Assembly: GCA_002104905.1 (NCBI GenBank) | Contig: MCFE01000609.1 | Span: 1-53,205 of the forward strand | Direction of reading: 5' to 3' | Origin: Basidiobolus meristosporus CBS 931.73 | Lineage: Eukaryota > Fungi > Basidiobolomycota | Length of the DNA: 53,205 nt | Part shown: positions 22,046 through 49,871 of the stretch, in pieces | Layout of the letters: every line of letters begins with the position of its first letter | Position numbering within the stretch: position 1 is the first letter of the stretch | The notes under the pieces: generated by a model | The model's database searches: none | Seen by the model: the letters and a program-made list of their open reading frames with translations, nothing else | Told to the model about the DNA's origin: nothing | Translations under genes and position numbers: made by a program

Positions 22046-24681
22046 ACGCCCTTGCTGCTCGCGTTAGTTTTGTAGCGACTAGATTTTAGGCTATGTTTTT
22101 TAAAAAACGCCCTACACGGTTGAGAACATCACACCACGCGCTTTGCGTGGAGGCGGTGTGTTATCGCTCTTCGTAAAACATCATCGGTGGATAACTCCAG
22201 GCAGCCGCCAGAATAAAGTTCTTGCAGCAAACAAATAGTTGAGCACCCGAAGAAGCATCAAAGATTACAGTTCGTTGGGAGGGTGGAAACAGCAGAAGTT
22301 TCGGGAGACTCTTGGGCTTCCATAGAACAGCAACATACCGAAGTCAGGGTAATTCTCTGCGAACATTTGATCTCGAGCCAACGCGTCCTCTAGGGAAGGA
22401 TTCGACGGGATACTCCAACTGGCTTCCTGTCTCACAAGTACTCTCCACAGCTCTGAAGATTGGTCACCAACCATGCATGTATCCACCAGCTTTCTTGCTT
22501 CCTAGCTTTGGTATCCCTAACTCTAGAAAGAGGCGTTTCCAGGGTGAAAATAAGGGATTCTTGAGTACCTCAGACGTCTCCGTGAAGACTGCATTGGACA
22601 GTTCTTTCTGGTGCCATACACAGCACAACCATGACCAAGATTAACATACGCGTATGGTGCAGCTGAACAAGGCTACCTCCATCGCACATCTGGTTTGAAG
22701 GAAGGTAACACACTCTGAATGGACTCGAATCACAATTTGAGGGTATCGGCATATCGGACACTGGCGGATACCAGATAGAGAACAACTTGGGGATCCCTGT
22801 GCTCGGCACTGATCACAAAGCCATTTCTGATGGGTAGACCCTGAAGAGATGGCTACCAGTGGGATGCACCCATCAAATACGTATTCAGGAGAATTTCCGA
22901 ATACCTGATAGGGCGCATGTTGCAAGAGATTGGGCCTAGGAAATTCAACTCAAAGAGGGGATTTTTGTGGGTGTGTGCAGTATACTTCGGTTCTGGTTTA
23001 CCACACGCACCGCTCGCTCTTGATATGGAAACTATACGGCCGACCAGACCACCAACCCTACAGTGTGCCATCCATCCCAATGCCTGAGCCAGATGATGAC
23101 AAGGCGGCTATCAATCCGATGCCCAGAAGGCTAGGTCAACTCCGGGGAGGGATTCGTCACCATCCATTTTGCAGAGAGCAACGTCGGGACTTCGAGTGCT
23201 ACAGCAAGATTTAAGGTTGGTTGGCTGGGATGGAGTATTGGCCAGACAATAGGAACCAATTGACGCCTATTCTAGTACGCACCATGCCCGCATCATGTGG
23301 CACCGAATGTCCAAAGCAATCACTGATAAGTCATTTTGGGACATTGGTGTTTGGTAACTTTTAGATGGCTAAATACATGAGTGGGTAGTTAGTTGATTTA
23401 CCTCGATTTGTGAATACCTGCCCATCCAGCGCAGGAGAAGGAGCTTTATGACGATAGATGGCAAGCCTAGGCTGGCGGATCTGGCTGGAGAGTGTTGAAT
23501 CATCGCCAGATCAGCCCGAATCCGCACCCCGGCTGGAAGGAAGGTCCAAAAGCGGCCAACCCATCAAGCAGCATATGGCAGTCGGGAAATGACCATGTCG
23601 AAAATACCCAAACTCCCAAGCGGCCCCGAAGGCCAACTCGTTGCCATTGGTGCCCACGATCAATTTAACTTCGAATTCAACATCACCCATATCTGGCCGA
23701 ATCATGCTTTTAAGCTTAGCTAAGCCAACGCATAAGCTGGAGAATTCGGAGTGGACTAGGGAGGCCAGCAGGTCCTTGTTTCACCACCGGTTAGGCAGGG
23801 ATTGAGCAAATGCGCCGAGAGATGGATTTCTATCTGAAGCGGTGTGGTTGCTCATGAGTAACTGGCCTTGATCTTGGCCTACGCAAGAACCTGAAAGAAC
23901 CTGCTTAGGCATACCCGTGTGCTTCGCACATTCCCCCGTCCAACCAGGTCTTCATTGGGTGACTCGCACTGCATCTCGAGCAAAAACTTTGTACCACGGA
24001 ACCGCTTCGATTCAGACCATCTGGTTTCCAGCCGAATAGGAGCCTTCTTATCCAGCCGTGGGTATTCCCAAAATCGCACCAACGAAACCTTACTGACAAG
24101 GTCTATATTTCTTACTAAGGTCATATGCGCTTGGAAAGCGCTGTCTAGCAAAGGGCAGCGGGTCGCCTTAATTGGCTGGCGTCTCCCTAGCATTGTAAAT
24201 TCCCCTTCCAAATATGTGGGCCGACTTGGGCACTTGATCCATTCTAGAGCGAAATGCCATTGGCGAGTCGCCACACCGGCCAATGAGGGCGTGGGGCGGC
24301 ATCACTTGCCATGGAATTTTGGCGATAATTGATGGATTTTCCGAAGTATGTGTTGTCCATAATTGGGTTGAAGCCACAAACCTCAATCTGTCTGGAAATA
24401 CTCGACTTATCGCTTGATTCTTGGTTTCGAACCAGGCCATCCAGGCCATATTTGGAAATCCTGTCAGATTGAGGGATCTCTTGGGTAACCTTGTCTATGT
24501 ATACTTAGGTGTAGCACCACTTCGAAGTATCGATTCTATTTAGTTAAGGTGGTTAGAGTGGGCATCGTATTGCCACCCGGCGTTGCTATAAATTCTTGGA
24601 GTCCCCCTTAATCAGCACCATCAAATAACCTCTTCACTTCACCCGACCTCCTTTCCTTCCTGCAGAACCATCACATCCAAC

Positions 24682-25364
24682 ATGACCAAAGTGCCAAGCA
24701 ATCGTCGTTGTTGCGGCTGTGTGAACCTCCGCACAGGCTGTCTTATCTTAACCTATTTCCAAATGGTATGCTCCTTTGGCCAGCGCTACTTCATGATCCT
24801 TGTATGATAACCGTGGAAAATCCCCTCTAGATTGGTGGCTTGGTTTTAAGCTTACTCGTAGTCATCCTGCTGGCTCTACTCCGGTCCACCCAGGCCAGAT
24901 CTTTCGAAGGATACAGCGTGGAGAATATCCGGATGGCTTCGTACATTCTGCTCGGCATCTCTATTTTCAGCAGTATCGTCGGATTACTTGGCGTGCTGGG
25001 CACTTACAAGGTAGGCACACTGATTTCACCCCCCTCGCAGCACCCCCAATCTAATCGGGACCCTTAGAGCAAACCCGGCCTGCTTCTTGCCTACTTGATA
25101 ATAGACGCCGTGTGCATCGCGGGTTGGTTCGGCGGGGTGATCGCAACCTTTCAGAGCCGCAACGCCCTCTGGGGCATCCAATTCACTGTGATGGTAAGAG
25201 GCGCATGAGACACCATGAGATGTCAACGGTGGTACTAACTTCAGACCCCCCCCCATCAATTCCAGCTGCTACTTCAAATCTATTTCTTCATCCCAGTGCA
25301 CCAGTATCGTCGAGAAATTCAAAACATCACCAAATATGTGTACGAAGTGAATCTGAAATGCTAA
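24682..25364 (+). CDS. Small 4-TM Cys-rich membrane protein, paralogue 1 (LAPTM/tetraspanin-like), 4 exons
   Basis: Spliced product MTKVPSNRRCCGCVNLRTGCLILTYFQM|IGGLVLSLL...GLLGVLGTYK|SKPGLLLAYLII...FTVM|LLLQIYFFIPVHQYRREIQ... Three phase-0 GT-AG introns. TATAAA at 24587. Confidence 0.85.
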
Positions 25365-35218: not shown

Positions 35219-35508
35219 CAGGGATGGCCCCCCATATGGGATAGGGGTGCAGCTATATGCCCCCATGCAAAGCCCTGGGTTTGCCAGACAACCCCCAGGG
35301 TTTACCAGGGGGGGATATATCATGGGGGCCTTTGGGTGGGTAGCTAGAGGGGGCAGGGGGGAGTAGCCATTGGGGTGGGAGGGGGAGGATTCAGGGAAAA
35401 AAGGACTTGAACCTTTAAAACTGATTATGGAGGTCAGTATTTTACCAATCAAATAATTTCCCTTACAATACATCAAATGCCCCCACCTAATAATGCTGCC
35501 CATCCCCT
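35219..35508. mobile_element. G/C-run-rich 290-bp insertion, possible hAT-like MITE
   Basis: No similarity to the intact Copia copy. Begins CAGGGATGGCC and ends GCCCATCCCCT (imperfect inverted termini). No TSD visible. Confidence 0.5.
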
Positions 35509-40929: not shown

Positions 40930-41892
40930 CTAATGGCTAGATGTATACTGTATCTCGTATCTGGGAGGTAACTCTTGGCAGCCAGGTTGATAGGAAGGCA
41001 AGAACTCATCCTCCTTGTCGCATATCTGAAGGGGAGTTCTTACGACAACGTACTTCTTGGTCCCGGAAGAGCTGAGTATGCTTATCTGGATCTCGATCAG
41101 ATGAGTTAGCTTTAGAAAAGGGCTCTTGCAGTCCGGCTGGGCGTTCTGGTCGATGGGCATCTGGACCCGATTGGAATGCACGGGTGGATTGTGCTTCCTC
41201 AGGTCTACATAGTGAAGGGTGTTCGGGAGCGGCCTCTTGATAGACTTGATGCTCCCATTCTTTGTGCAGTATCTGACTGCCTCTATGATGCAGATCCGCA
41301 GGGACTCGATCTTAGATTTATCGTTGAGTAGTCGGGTTCCGATGTTCAGGAGCACCTGCTGGCCTGGCTGGTAGGAATTCGAATCGGAGTAGATGGTGAA
41401 CCCTATTTCGCCGCGGACCTCTCCGAATTTCAACAGCTCCTGGGAGTTGATGTCGTCAACAGCGGTGGAGTGGATTCGTCGGATTCGGACAAGTCGCTCG
41501 TGCTTCATCTCCGACTGCAGCGAAAAGCCCTCTCTCTTGGCAACCGCCTTGATGAGGTACTTGATAGCACCATCTCGGGATTGGACCGACTCGGGTAGGT
41601 CACCAGCAAGAGGTAACTCGAAATGGTACACATACGTGCCACAGCTAAACCCCTTGGTCTGCTGCGTCGATTCCAAGAACTCGATCCTGTGCTGAACAAA
41701 TATTTCCGGACGTTCAAATGGAATCATCACTACGCCTTGAAGGTAGAGCTGGAGAGAGTGGATTTTGCTCGCGCTGCGCAGGTCCAGCTGTACATAGCCA
41801 CGCAGTGCTTGGCCTGTCGCGCTGTCTTGGCAGCCACGAAATACGACCTCGTCACTAAAAAGATGGACATGGAGATTGTTGTTCGCCCACAT
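40930..41892 (-). CDS. Alpha-arrestin (arrestin-related trafficking adaptor), intronless
   Basis: 320-aa ORF. Arrestin-N signature LRGYVQL...GTYVYHFELPLAGDLPES...IKYLIKAVAKR, an arrestin-C region, and C-terminal PY motifs LPSY and PPRY. Confidence 0.92.
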   Translation of the reverse strand: MWANNNLHVHLFSDEVVFRGCQDSATGQALRGYVQLDLRSASKIHSLQLYLQGVVMIPFERPEIFVQHRIEFLESTQQTKGFSCGTYVYHFELPLAGDLPESVQSRDGAIKYLIKAVAKREGFSLQSEMKHERLVRIRRIHSTAVDDINSQELLKFGEVRGEIGFTIYSDSNSYQPGQQVLLNIGTRLLNDKSKIESLRICIIEAVRYCTKNGSIKSIKRPLPNTLHYVDLRKHNPPVHSNRVQMPIDQNAQPDCKSPFLKLTHLIEIQISILSSSGTKKYVVVRTPLQICDKEDEFLPSYQPGCQELPPRYEIQYTSSH

Positions 41893-43501: not shown

Positions 43502-44458
43502 TCAGAAATAGAGGGGCAGGTATGAGCTGCTGAAGTAGCTGGGCGGTTGGGCTATCGCTGTGCTGTACTCGGGGAGCCCTTCTTCAGAGTCTGGCATCTC
43601 TTGGGGTAGGAATTTTAGCGGAGTACGCACAGCGACCTCTCTTTTGGAGCCGTTGATGTCCGAGAATGTGAATGTAAGGTTTAGCTCATGCGATATGGAC
43701 ACATATTCATTCTGGCAATCGGGGTGAATGCTTGATTTCATCGAGCTTGTTGGAAAGACGATCTCTTCGTACCATTGTCGATGGCCGATGGGTAGCCAAC
43801 TGGTGGACACCTCGTGGAGCAGTGTTTTCATTTGCTCTTTGCGCCCATGCGTTCTTCTGGAGACGCTTTCGATCAAGCCGATGCGAATACGATGCACCTG
43901 ATTGCCGTAGCCCAAAGACTGAGTGCCCACATGGAGGAACACGGAGTCACCAGGCTTGTAGCTTGAGGATGGGGAGAAAAGGCAAAACCCAAACCTGGAA
44001 TGGAACTCCCCCACTTTATACAGGGACTGGATCTCCTCCTGAGCCCCATCGATCCTCTTAACAAGTAGCTCTTTTTCAGCGTGAAGGTCGCCCCAGTAGC
44101 CAACGCGCTTGGCAACAGCATTGAACATGTATTTGATACTGGTAAGACTACAGCTCATGCTCTCTGGCGAATCCCCAGGCAGTGGGAACTCGAAGTGATA
44201 TTCGTACCGCCCCGGCGGAAATTCGTTGGCTTGGCTCTCCTCCAAGAGGGACACGTGGTGGCGCAGGAAATGCTCCGCAGCGGCCTCTCCCGAGCACCAT
44301 CCTTTCAAGCTTAGCTCGATGGATGTGATTTTCGTGGGGTATCGTATGTTAAGTGCTACGTGGCCACGGATTACCTGGCCGGATGACGAGCTGCTGTCGC
44401 CTGCTAGAACGATTCTATCGTTTTCCAGAAAGATTTGCAGAGAATTGAATGCCCACAT
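43502..44458 (-). CDS. Alpha-arrestin paralogue, intronless
   Basis: 318-aa ORF. IRGHVAL...GRYEYHFEFPLPGDSPES...IKYMFNAVAKR; C-terminal LPEY and PPSY. Confidence 0.92.
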   Translation of the reverse strand: MWAFNSLQIFLENDRIVLAGDSSSSSGQVIRGHVALNIRYPTKITSIELSLKGWCSGEAAAEHFLRHHVSLLEESQANEFPPGRYEYHFEFPLPGDSPESMSCSLTSIKYMFNAVAKRVGYWGDLHAEKELLVKRIDGAQEEIQSLYKVGEFHSRFGFCLFSPSSSYKPGDSVFLHVGTQSLGYGNQVHRIRIGLIESVSRRTHGRKEQMKTLLHEVSTSWLPIGHRQWYEEIVFPTSSMKSSIHPDCQNEYVSISHELNLTFTFSDINGSKREVAVRTPLKFLPQEMPDSEEGLPEYSTAIAQPPSYFSSSYLPLYF

Positions 44459-46038: not shown

Positions 46039-47858
46039 TTAGTTTCCATGATTGATTTTTTCATTCAAGGAAATAATCGCACTGTAGGTACCAAATCCAC
46101 AACTCATGAAGCCGATGAAAACAATTAAAAGTTCCGTTAACTTCGTAGACAAATTTGACGGCCCACCAAATAGTCGACGGTTAAACACTATTGGCAATAC
46201 CTATAGTCAATCGTTAGTTCAATGCTACATTGCATCCGTTGGAGGTGTGTGCGCTTACAAATATCAACATGGAGTTAGAGATTGCTCCTAGAAGGGTAAT
46301 CACCTCAGCGAAGTATGGCAAGATAACCGCAACTAAAGCTGAGGATGACAGTAGTATGGTGCGAAATGCGACCCTGCTCAAAAGTTCTTGTCCCCCGGAC
46401 ATGTGGATGCGATCAATCTTCATGAGATGCTCAACCTAACGGGGGGTCAGTACGGATCTAATTACAACGTACAGAAAGGGAATTACCTCCAATGCCAGCG
46501 AAGCTAATAGAATTGGGTTTGTGAGGAGTACGTGTGCAGTGATAACGACAATGGCGAAAGTCAAACAATAGCCTGGATTGTATAGGCGTTAGAAAGTGAA
46601 TTCTAGAATTGTTTAAGTATTCAGGATTCTCATCTACCGTCTGGCAAAGTCTTCAGGATGGGGGACTCGACCTTGTCCCCGTACACGTAATAGCCAACAA
46701 ACGCGGTCACAAAATACATCAAGAAGACTGTGATAAGGGCTTTCTTCAAAACTTTAGGCCAGTCCTTTCTATTGCTCATGCTGTGTTCTACATGAGGGAA
46801 AACGCTGTTGCCACCAAATGAAAAGCCAACCGATGCCAGAACCGAAGGGAAAGCCAGATAATTGAAGTATTCGTGCTTTACATCCGTAACGTTGTGCAGA
46901 TCAGTGAAACCCGTAACAAGCACAATGAAAACCATAATTACGGTAGCAAAAGCTCCAAAAAAGCTAAGGAACAAAGTCAATATGCTACTGTCAATATTGC
47001 TGGTCATGAATCCTCACCTTAAGATAGCTACCTCCTTCAGTGTTTTCATGAAGACGAAGGGTGGCCAAATCATTAGTGTACAGATTACAATCCTTTAACA
47101 GAGTGATTGAGTATCAAGGTATATACAGAATGGTGAGAAAAATATGTTTCTTCCATACCAGTGCGCTCCGGTGATTTGAGGCAGAACATCCTTGAAGAGC
47201 TGGCGGAAATTGGCAGAAGCAAGGATGAAAAACAGCGCAGAGGATCCAAACATCATCGTAGCAGTAAAGAAGTTCACCAACAGGCGGCCGCACTTTCCGA
47301 ACGCCACATGACCGACCTCGGCCAGACTGTTCAGACGTTTTCTATGAAAACTTAGAATTAGATAACCGTTCTTGATTTTTTACTCTACACAACGTTCAAG
47401 AAGCTTACCCGTCAACGTATAGGCATTTGATCAGTAAAATGCCACTATAGTAGGCAATGCAGGAACACAGGGCAATGCTTCCCAATCCGATCCACCCTCC
47501 CTGTCTTAGACAAAACGGTAGCTGGAGGTGCGATGAAGTTAAGGCGAAATATGTGTGGAAAATTGACCAAAATATTTGACGAAATAGTATAAAGGATATG
47601 ACACCAGAACCAGCCATAATGCATCTGTATAGTGGAGAAAAATTAGCAGGGAGTAGAATCACACGGAGCATGAAATACATACACTAAGTTGAAATAGGCT
47701 CCCCAACTGGACCCATGATGACCCTCGTCAAACAGCTCAAGCTCACCCTCCACCTGATCTACTTTATCATCTGGAGAAGAGGTTAGGGCTGCCTGTGTGC
47801 AATTTCAAACAACGATCATACCAATGCTGCTCACCGCACCATACGTCCTTCGGGGCAT
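46039..47858 (-). CDS. AAAP/Avt-family amino acid transporter, multi-exon
   Basis: Spliced product MPRRTYGAV...GSSWGAYFNLVCIMAGSGVLQLPFCLRQGGWIG...LLIKCLY...VAFGKCG...FSFGGNSVFPHVEHSM...YYVYGDKVESPIL...LPYFAEVITLLGA. Short GT-AG introns plus one AT-AC intron. Confidence 0.93.
47528..47599 (-). other. U12-type (minor spliceosome) AT-AC intron, 72 nt
   Basis: 5' site ATATCCTTT (47599-47591), branch CCTTAAC (47544-47538), 3' end AC. Removal restores GSGVLQLP. Confidence 0.9.
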
Positions 47859-49871
47859 TTCAGATTTTAGATATTGCTTGTCGGAAAGATTTGAATCAGG
47901 CCAGGTCATAGTAGATGCTCAAACGGTGAGAATTATTTCGAGGGTAAAATAGTTTAACAGAATGCTGAAGAGCCAAGATTTATAGGGTTTCTCCTCTAGA
48001 CTGAAACGTGACGTCTGGAGCAAAGAAAAGTATTCTAAAGGGGGTGTAACTACGAACTGCAAATAATGAAAATCTTGATCGAAGAAGCCCGCGTATTTAT
48101 AGTCCGGAACGAAGGAATGTTTATGAGCCTTGGTATTGGTTGTCCCATCGCATGACATGGTGTTGGAATCTCAATAATGAATATGGCACAATCATATCCA
48201 AATCATTTCATTGCACTCGGTGTGCATCTACAACTATCTGATTCTATAATTGTTTATATCAATCTCCAAGGGTATTCTTGGTTTACAATCATTTGTCTTT
48301 GATGACTCGTAGAATATCAGGAACAAGTCAAAGTGATAAGAGTAGCACAGCATAAATCTATAAAGCTTGGTACTAAATCACGCAATGGCTCACGGGAAAA
48401 GATTCATATCTGTAACACTCCTGACTGCGTGACAACATTCATATCGAGTTTCCATTTTTGAAATGAAGGGATTCTACATTTGGAATTGCCAGAGCCACAG
48501 CACGTTTGCCGTAGGGGTACGAAGCCGCTATTGGAGATGTACCTTGATTCTGGAATACCTATAGTAGCCTAGTATATAGATCAGTCATCGCTGGCCTTAT
48601 CATATGATGACATCGCGGTAGTCATGGGTGGCAGTAAGACCTATGCATCGGACGAGATTGGCTTAGAAATAGATCTAATATTACACCGCACCCAATGGAA
48701 GTGACCCAGGCAGCCAATTTTTAGCTGATCACACGACTGATAATTGTTCATGTTGCCATATTCATTCAGATGGATATAGATCGTCGAGCTTTGCGATTGC
48801 TATGGCACATGTTGATAGTAGTCGAGTGCTTCGAATGATCCCATGGCTCCTTGGCCTACGAAAGCATCGATGTACGCAATGAGCGATTGAGCGGAAAGTC
48901 CAAGTTGATTGGTGTGTGGCTGCACTTGTTTGGATTTGCTCCGATACTGCATGAATGAGCTCTAGTAGCTGGGAAATTTAACGACTGAGAAAGTCAGGAG
49001 GAAAACAAACCGCTTTCGTCATTGCTTCAGCGCTCATATCAACTACACTCAACGTGTGAGCAGCCTCGGGATGTTGGAGCATACTGAATGGTGACACAGC
49101 CTAAGGAAGGCGCCATTTTAGAAGCTTTTAGATCAAGGTTTCATCTATAGCCCTGGCTCCTTATTGGTCATGGGGTCATTTACAATGGCTTATTAATATG
49201 TCATTCACATACCTAATCCTGGCGGGATCGTTGTATTGAGTTGTATGTATCGTCTCTGTATGCATGGTTTCCCTTCATCAGGGGGACCACCACTGATCTT
49301 GGAGAAAGATCTGACAGCGAGCTTGTAATTCTTCGGGCATGAACATACGAAGATAGGGGTGTTTGGGGTCAATTTAGGACTACACGCAGGTGCATGTTCA
49401 TGGTAGACACTGCTCCGGCTATGCCGTTTCACAAAACAATCTATAGCCTAGTCATGGAGTGCTTCCAGTAGAGCGGACAGCAAGTCCACATTTCGGGCTC
49501 TAAAGGAGCAGCGGTGAGTGTGCTGTACGCCACAGAGACCCTCATGGCTAAGGCAAATCAATGGCATCCCAGTGAAACTCTAGCAACTGGCTAGCTAATG
49601 AATGCACCATGCAATCATTTTATATATGCGATCGGGTCACCAAACAAATGTGGTTGTTGGGCTTTAATTATCTTAAAGCTACCATTGAACCAATCAACAC
49701 AGCTTCACCTCATATTTCCATTTATGGCCTTGTGAGCTATTAATCATCTGCGTGATCTGATGCAGGAGAAGCATCGCAATGACTATGATTTACTGACATA
49801 TTTCGTGGTTTAACAAATATTCCCAAAATTGACACCATCTTTATCCAATGACTAGTCACCCGGAACAGCAT

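Follow-up and report, generated by a model that had tools for sequence, protein, structure and literature searches.

Results

The Transporter Gene and Its Neighborhood

The window, i.e., the whole stretch of 53,205 nt that was analyzed (contig MCFE01000609.1 of Basidiobolus meristosporus CBS 931.73), contains a whole gene with an Aa_trans domain (PF01490) on the minus strand at 46039..47909, a span identical to that of the public gene. In the corrected model, which was obtained by three-frame translation and boundary mapping, the gene has 10 exons and 442 codons, starts with an ATG at 47909 and ends with a TAA at 46041-46039. Exons 1-5 are located at 47909-47822, 47770-47683, 47624-47600, 47527-47409, and 47341-47159, and exons 6-10 at 47092-47018, 46963-46638, 46572-46487, 46435-46259, and 46200-46039. 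Exon 3 is a micro-exon of 25 nt (47600..47624, minus strand) encoding (V)CIMAGSGV. It is preceded by a U2-type intron of 58 nt (47625..47682, minus strand; GTATGT...CTAAT...CAG), whose position is kept in B. ranarum, in the paralogues and in Funneliformis. Apart from intron 3, which is described below, the remaining eight introns of the gene measure 51-67 nt, and all of them start with GT and end with AG.

When the exons were searched separately against PF01490 (curated cut-off, 25.6 bits), exons 4, 5, 7, and 9 were matched in co-linear order along the profile. Exon 7 alone scored 59.8 bits and exon 9 25.7 bits; exons 4 and 5 were just under the cut-off. Exon 4 (47409..47527, minus strand; LQLPFCLRQGGWIG...CLYVDG) covered profile positions 22-59 with an E value of 7.6e-06, and the junction between exons 3 and 4 corresponds approximately to position 21/22 of the 410 positions of Aa_trans. 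The splice product at this junction, ...CIMAGSGV / LQLPFCLRQGGW..., is the first conserved motif of the domain. The Pfam matches on four exons and the G-x-G-x-L-x-L-P motif, with ...CLY... downstream of it as in AAAP/Aa_trans transporters, point to a putative transporter of this family. One Choanephora relative in the same subfamily is named “Vesicular inhibitory amino acid transporter,” and the transporter of the window presumably resembles yeast AVT1 or animal VGAT.

Two arrestin-domain genes were also found on the minus strand of the window, at 43502-44458 and 40930-41892, with weak matches to Arrestin_N and Arrestin_C; a single-exon gene of this kind neighbors the transporter. One or two arrestin-domain genes follow the transporter on the same strand not only in the window but also in the contig of the B. 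meristosporus paralogue (L005:4482-5462) and in B. ranarum (L006:4788-5768). As far as the predicted genes indicate, the transporter-arrestin neighborhood is conserved at these three loci. In yeast, arrestin-like adaptors govern the turnover of amino-acid transporters. Additionally, an Rfam scan of the window revealed no minor snRNA gene in this contig, the only match being a tRNA gene at 35393-35462 on the minus strand (38 bits).

A Putative U12-Type AT-AC Intron Downstream of the Micro-Exon

Intron 3 of the corrected model is a phase 0, U12-type AT-AC intron of 72 nt, located at 47528..47599 on the minus strand. The sequence around it reads ...ACAG / A TGC ATT ATG GCT GGT TCT GGT GTC / intron / CTC CAG CTA CCG. 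The 5' splice site ATATCCTTT (47591..47599, minus strand), found by sequence reading and motif scan, conforms to the U12 pattern /[AG]TATCCTT at 47599-47591. The branch-site box GCCTTAAC (47538..47545, minus strand), located in the same manner and containing CCTTAAC at 47544-47538, agrees with the branch consensus TCCTTAAC in seven of eight positions. It ends 10 nt before the 3' end of the intron, in keeping with the spacing of ~10-15 nt to the 3' splice site that is characteristic of these boxes, and no polypyrimidine tract is present. The predicted branch adenosines, 47540 and 47539, lie at positions 13 and 12 counted from the 3' end. The AT at the 5' terminus is paired with a terminal AC (47528..47529, minus strand), and AC was found in all five copies of the intron at this position. 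Hence, the AT-AC segment of 72 nt, the CCTTAAC ~10 nt from its end and the AC terminus described in the original prediction were confirmed on the minus strand, and so was, by sequence and boundary mapping, the micro-exon at 47600-47624 between a U2-type and a U12 intron. The GC content of the segment (0.32) resembles that of the neighboring introns, the exons having 0.455, and its length fits with theirs.

The specificity of these signals was estimated against shuffled sequence. The counts of the single motifs in the window were at chance level (6 vs. 4.8 expected, and 7 vs. 5.9 expected). A strict composite pattern, consisting of the 5' site followed within 400 nt by CCTTAAC, then 7-13 nt, and then AC or AG, gave one match in the window, at 47599-47528, against 0.062 expected per shuffled window. 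Over a genome of ~90 Mb, this chance rate would yield dozens of matches, so the motif alone is only suggestive and not decisive; the segment is raised above chance by its coding context and by homologous introns that share its position. A second U12 intron candidate was considered at 24543-24914 on the minus strand, with GTATCCTT at 24914 and CCTTAAC at 24549-24543, ~365 nt apart. It was judged to be a chance pairing: the AG lies only 5 nt past the box, and the candidate showed no coding context and was not recovered by the composite scan.

AT-AC Introns at the Same Position in Other Basidiobolus Genes

Homologues were searched with exon 7 (108 aa) in a representative library of 1.84 billion sequences, and the proteins of the relatives were mapped onto their gene DNA. 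Four further AT-AC introns were located at the identical codon boundary, after G-x-G-x, in two Basidiobolus species. In B. meristosporus, K493DRAFT_393001 carries an intron of 68 nt (L005:2251-2318; 5' site ATATCCTTT, branch box TTCTTAAC, AC end) and K493DRAFT_290882 one of 67 nt (L007:1386-1452; ATATCCTTT, TGCTTAAC, AC). In B. ranarum, the corresponding introns are those of K7432_003479 (L006:2309-2382; 74 nt, ATATCCTTC, CCTTTAAC, AC) and K7432_001767 (L012:767-844; 78 nt with two in-frame stops, ATATCCTTC, TTCCTTAAC, AC). The original prediction had proposed comparing the intron position in orthologues, and the AT-AC intron of the B. ranarum orthologue, K7432_003479, lies at the same boundary.

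The first eight bases of the 5' site, ATATCCTT, were invariant in the three closest copies (alignment A1) and were again present in the L007 and L012 genes. All of the same-position introns have a branch box that stops 10-11 nt short of the 3' end, with TTAAC at this distance in four of the four homologous introns. Conservation among the three copies of A1 was limited to the 5' site, TTAAC and the 3' terminus; the interiors had diverged and the lengths differed. The eight residues of the micro-exon (C..V/T) are encoded at the corresponding place in L005, L006, and L007; together with an extra base before the block, this gives 25 nt in each (flanks read by eye). The window intron therefore has the boundary and the splice signals in common with the other four copies, with the 25-nt micro-exon read upstream in three of them, and outside the signals its interior cannot be aligned with theirs.

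In alignment A2, the query was the contiguous stop-free read-through of the window (47411-47623, minus strand). In every homologue spanning the junction, a clean gap stood opposite the 24 codons of the segment, exactly between G-S-G-V and L-Q-L-P. The joined flanks were 96% identical to the paralogue K493DRAFT_393001 and 98% identical to the B. ranarum orthologue K7432_003479. Removal of the intron gives G-S-G-V-L-Q-L-P, with the spacing seen in every homologue examined, and the pattern G-x-G-x-L-x-[LMI]-[PAS], followed by ...GGW..., was uninterrupted in all of the inspected full-length homologues retaining the region. That splicing restores the conserved G-x-G-x-L-x-L-P motif, as initially proposed, was thus borne out by A2.

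The Stop-Free Reading Frame of the Segment

The three-frame translation also reproduced the 24 stop-free residues that had been quoted for the retained intron: the segment can be read through in frame with 24 codons and no stop, and retention would place 24 residues within the first conserved motif, between G-S-G-V and L-Q-L-P. The original prediction went further and proposed that a real U12 intron could act as a regulated, NMD-invisible switch, whose in-frame retention would yield an altered or dead transporter. The retained intron creates no stop and U12 introns are often slowly spliced, both of which are consistent with a switch of this kind. The four homologous introns nevertheless do not share this property: the lengths of 68, 67, and 74 nt shift the frame and the 78-nt copy contains stops, so that none of the four is both in frame and stop-free, and the window intron stands alone in this respect. 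When the interior of the 72-nt intron was shuffled, the sequence was stop-free 40% of the time, which, multiplied by the one-third of lengths divisible by three, gives an expectation of ~13% for such introns. With a chance of ~13% among roughly 250 minor introns, a stop-free frame is an unremarkable coincidence. A regulated switch is accordingly very unlikely and this part of the original prediction was not upheld; that the recently duplicated copy in the window uses in-frame retention for a variant protein is kept as a second, weaker reading beside that of a constitutive AT-AC intron, which is preferred here.

Errors in the Public Gene Models

The public model of the window gene, K493DRAFT_387366 (hypothetical protein of B. 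meristosporus CBS 931.73), has 402 aa vs. 442 in the corrected model. Mapping of the public protein to the DNA showed that it does not use the AT-AC intron and instead removes 81 nt as a U2-type GT-AG intron at 47602-47522 (47522..47602, minus strand), which gives ...AGSG/LPFCL... and loses V-L-Q. This annotation in itself counts against the AT-AC reading: it is the deposited model, it keeps the frame and its intron has GT and AG ends. On the other hand, V-L-Q is present in all of the homologues, both in A2 and on homologue inspection; the donor, GTCATA, is unlike the other donors of the gene (GTA or GTG, then a purine-rich run); and the models of the paralogue and the orthologue splice an AT-AC intron at this very spot. 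The possibility that the public model is correct here is consequently highly improbable. The warning in the original prediction that annotation restricted to GT-AG introns would mis-model this gene proved to be justified, the loss of V-L-Q through the false GT-AG intron being the case in point.

Furthermore, the same model contains two other errors. A second false GT-AG intron, of 51 nt, lies at 47445..47495 on the minus strand (edges read from the sequence) and removes 17 residues, WIGLGSIALCSCIAYYS, which follow the G-G of the QGGW motif and are conserved in relatives. The third error, at 47724-47834 on the minus strand, skips 20 residues, VSSIDDKVDQVEGELELFDE. Relatives possess each of the three deleted stretches, and both the paralogue and the orthologue of B. 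ranarum have conserved those of 17 and 20 residues; the acidic stretch ELELFDE of the window gene corresponds to ELELIDE in the B. ranarum orthologue. With two further deletions of conserved sequence, K493DRAFT_387366 is generally unreliable as a model.

The public models of K493DRAFT_393001, K7432_003479, and K493DRAFT_290882 already splice this intron as AT-AC. That of K7432_001767 (JASJQH010006918.1) lacks the AT-AC splice, and its product, ...CVIA/AVIAVYSG..., is missing the whole G-T-G-T...GGW part of TM1; on the DNA of its gene, the same intron accounts for the error in this second model. In addition, the model of a family member of 424 aa (P0044) jumps from ...SSWAAYINV to TKTRLNTY..., without TM1, and may be another model broken at this place.

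The reading of the 72 nt as a coding, lineage-specific insertion of 24 residues into the first conserved motif, never spliced, agrees with the in-frame and stop-free segment but is barely tenable, given the gap in every homologue (including the 96%-identical paralogue), the perfect U12 signals, the intron-like composition, at which a stop-free segment arises ~40% of the time by chance, a PDB search with the read-through whose sole match was a non-significant phosphate transporter (E 0.22), and the homologous segments, which cannot be coding because three of their lengths are not multiples of three and the 78-nt copy contains stops.

Distribution of the Intron in the Family

Among the homologues sampled, the AT-AC intron was restricted to Basidiobolus, where it was found in five genes belonging to two well-separated clades. 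It was absent from B. ranarum K7432_000084 (L003:3263-3406) and from Funneliformis caledonium (L008:1249-1392), where the matched block of exons 3 and 4 consists of 144 nt (48 codons) and both flanking U2 introns are retained. It was also absent from Neoconidiobolus thromboides, from Piptocephalis and from the intronless B. ranarum gene K7432_006914. The latter (L011:501-1796), which encodes 431 aa straight from the DNA, is possibly a retro-copy.

In the family tree, which included the faulty public model of the window gene and whose deep forks lack resolution, the window gene and K493DRAFT_393001 were paralogues, co-orthologous to K7432_003479 (support of the trio, 100/100). The sister pair of this trio was formed by K7432_000084 and K7432_003264, the intron being absent in the single gene of the pair that was checked. 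K493DRAFT_290882 and K7432_001767 were placed in another clade (98/98) with Piptocephalis. The end branches of the window gene and K493DRAFT_393001 (0.21 and 0.19) were about three times as long as that of K7432_003479 (0.06), and the long branch of the window gene may partly stem from the faulty model used in the tree.

Discussion

The results presented here suggest, with a probability of roughly 0.93, that 47599-47528 is a constitutive U12-dependent AT-AC intron in the AAAP/Aa_trans gene K493DRAFT_387366. The U12-type assignment made in the original prediction is supported by the exact signals, by the sole composite match in the window and by the four introns at the same position. We infer that the segment is spliced in RNA from these signals, the logic of the coding frame, the gap in the homologues and the same-position introns. 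In U12-dependent splicing, U11 and then U6atac act at the 5' site, and U12 acts at the branch box. In the intron of the window, U11 and subsequently U6atac would pair with ATATCCTTT, through its ATATCCTT part, and U12 would pair with the CCTTAAC box of GCCTTAAC. The branch adenosine and the AC end would then be ~12 nt apart, and the short distance between the box and the end would replace the polypyrimidine tract. Excision would finally join the 25-nt micro-exon to exon 4.

The intron resembles the U12-type AT-AC introns previously described (PMC10639083; PMC11347168) in its ATATCCTT, its TCCTTAAC-like box, its AC end and the lack of a polypyrimidine tract. In contrast to the catalogued minor introns of Basidiobolus, it is not annotated in its own gene, and it is in frame and stop-free, apparently by coincidence. 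For B. meristosporus, one study reported 249 minor introns, a density (0.554%) above that of any other fungus (PMC10639083), and another study reported 237 (PMC11347168). Genes for U11, U12, and U6atac have been described in zoopagomycote species, together with a putative divergent U4atac in B. meristosporus (PMC11347168). The proposal that this organism has a minor spliceosome therefore agrees with both publications (PMC10639083; PMC11347168), although not as a new inference, as the minor spliceosome and the richness of this species in minor introns were already known.

Regarding its origin, the position of the intron is common to several Basidiobolus members of the family, which argues that it was inherited and not newly made in the window gene; on the family tree, the intron is older than the duplication that produced that gene. 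Most simply, the distribution would reflect an ancient intron that was kept in Basidiobolus and lost elsewhere, which is also the ordinary reading. A gain in the Basidiobolus lineage, after which either parallel insertion at a single site or gene conversion would have carried the intron to other paralogues, is unlikely. If this gain had taken place, the intron would be part of a Physarum-like expansion explaining the record density of minor introns in Basidiobolus.

The practical value of the result lies mainly in the corrected gene model, and knowledge of fungal minor splicing is unchanged by it. The correction of K493DRAFT_387366 restores 40 residues, some of which belong to the motif close to the beginning of the transporter domain. 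Since the AT-AC intron is absent from the annotation of its own gene, catalogues built on annotated introns would probably miss it, and tallies of Basidiobolus minor introns that rely on annotation fall short of the true number. The five copies at one position beside intron-less relatives constitute a small and well-defined case for the retention and loss of minor introns.
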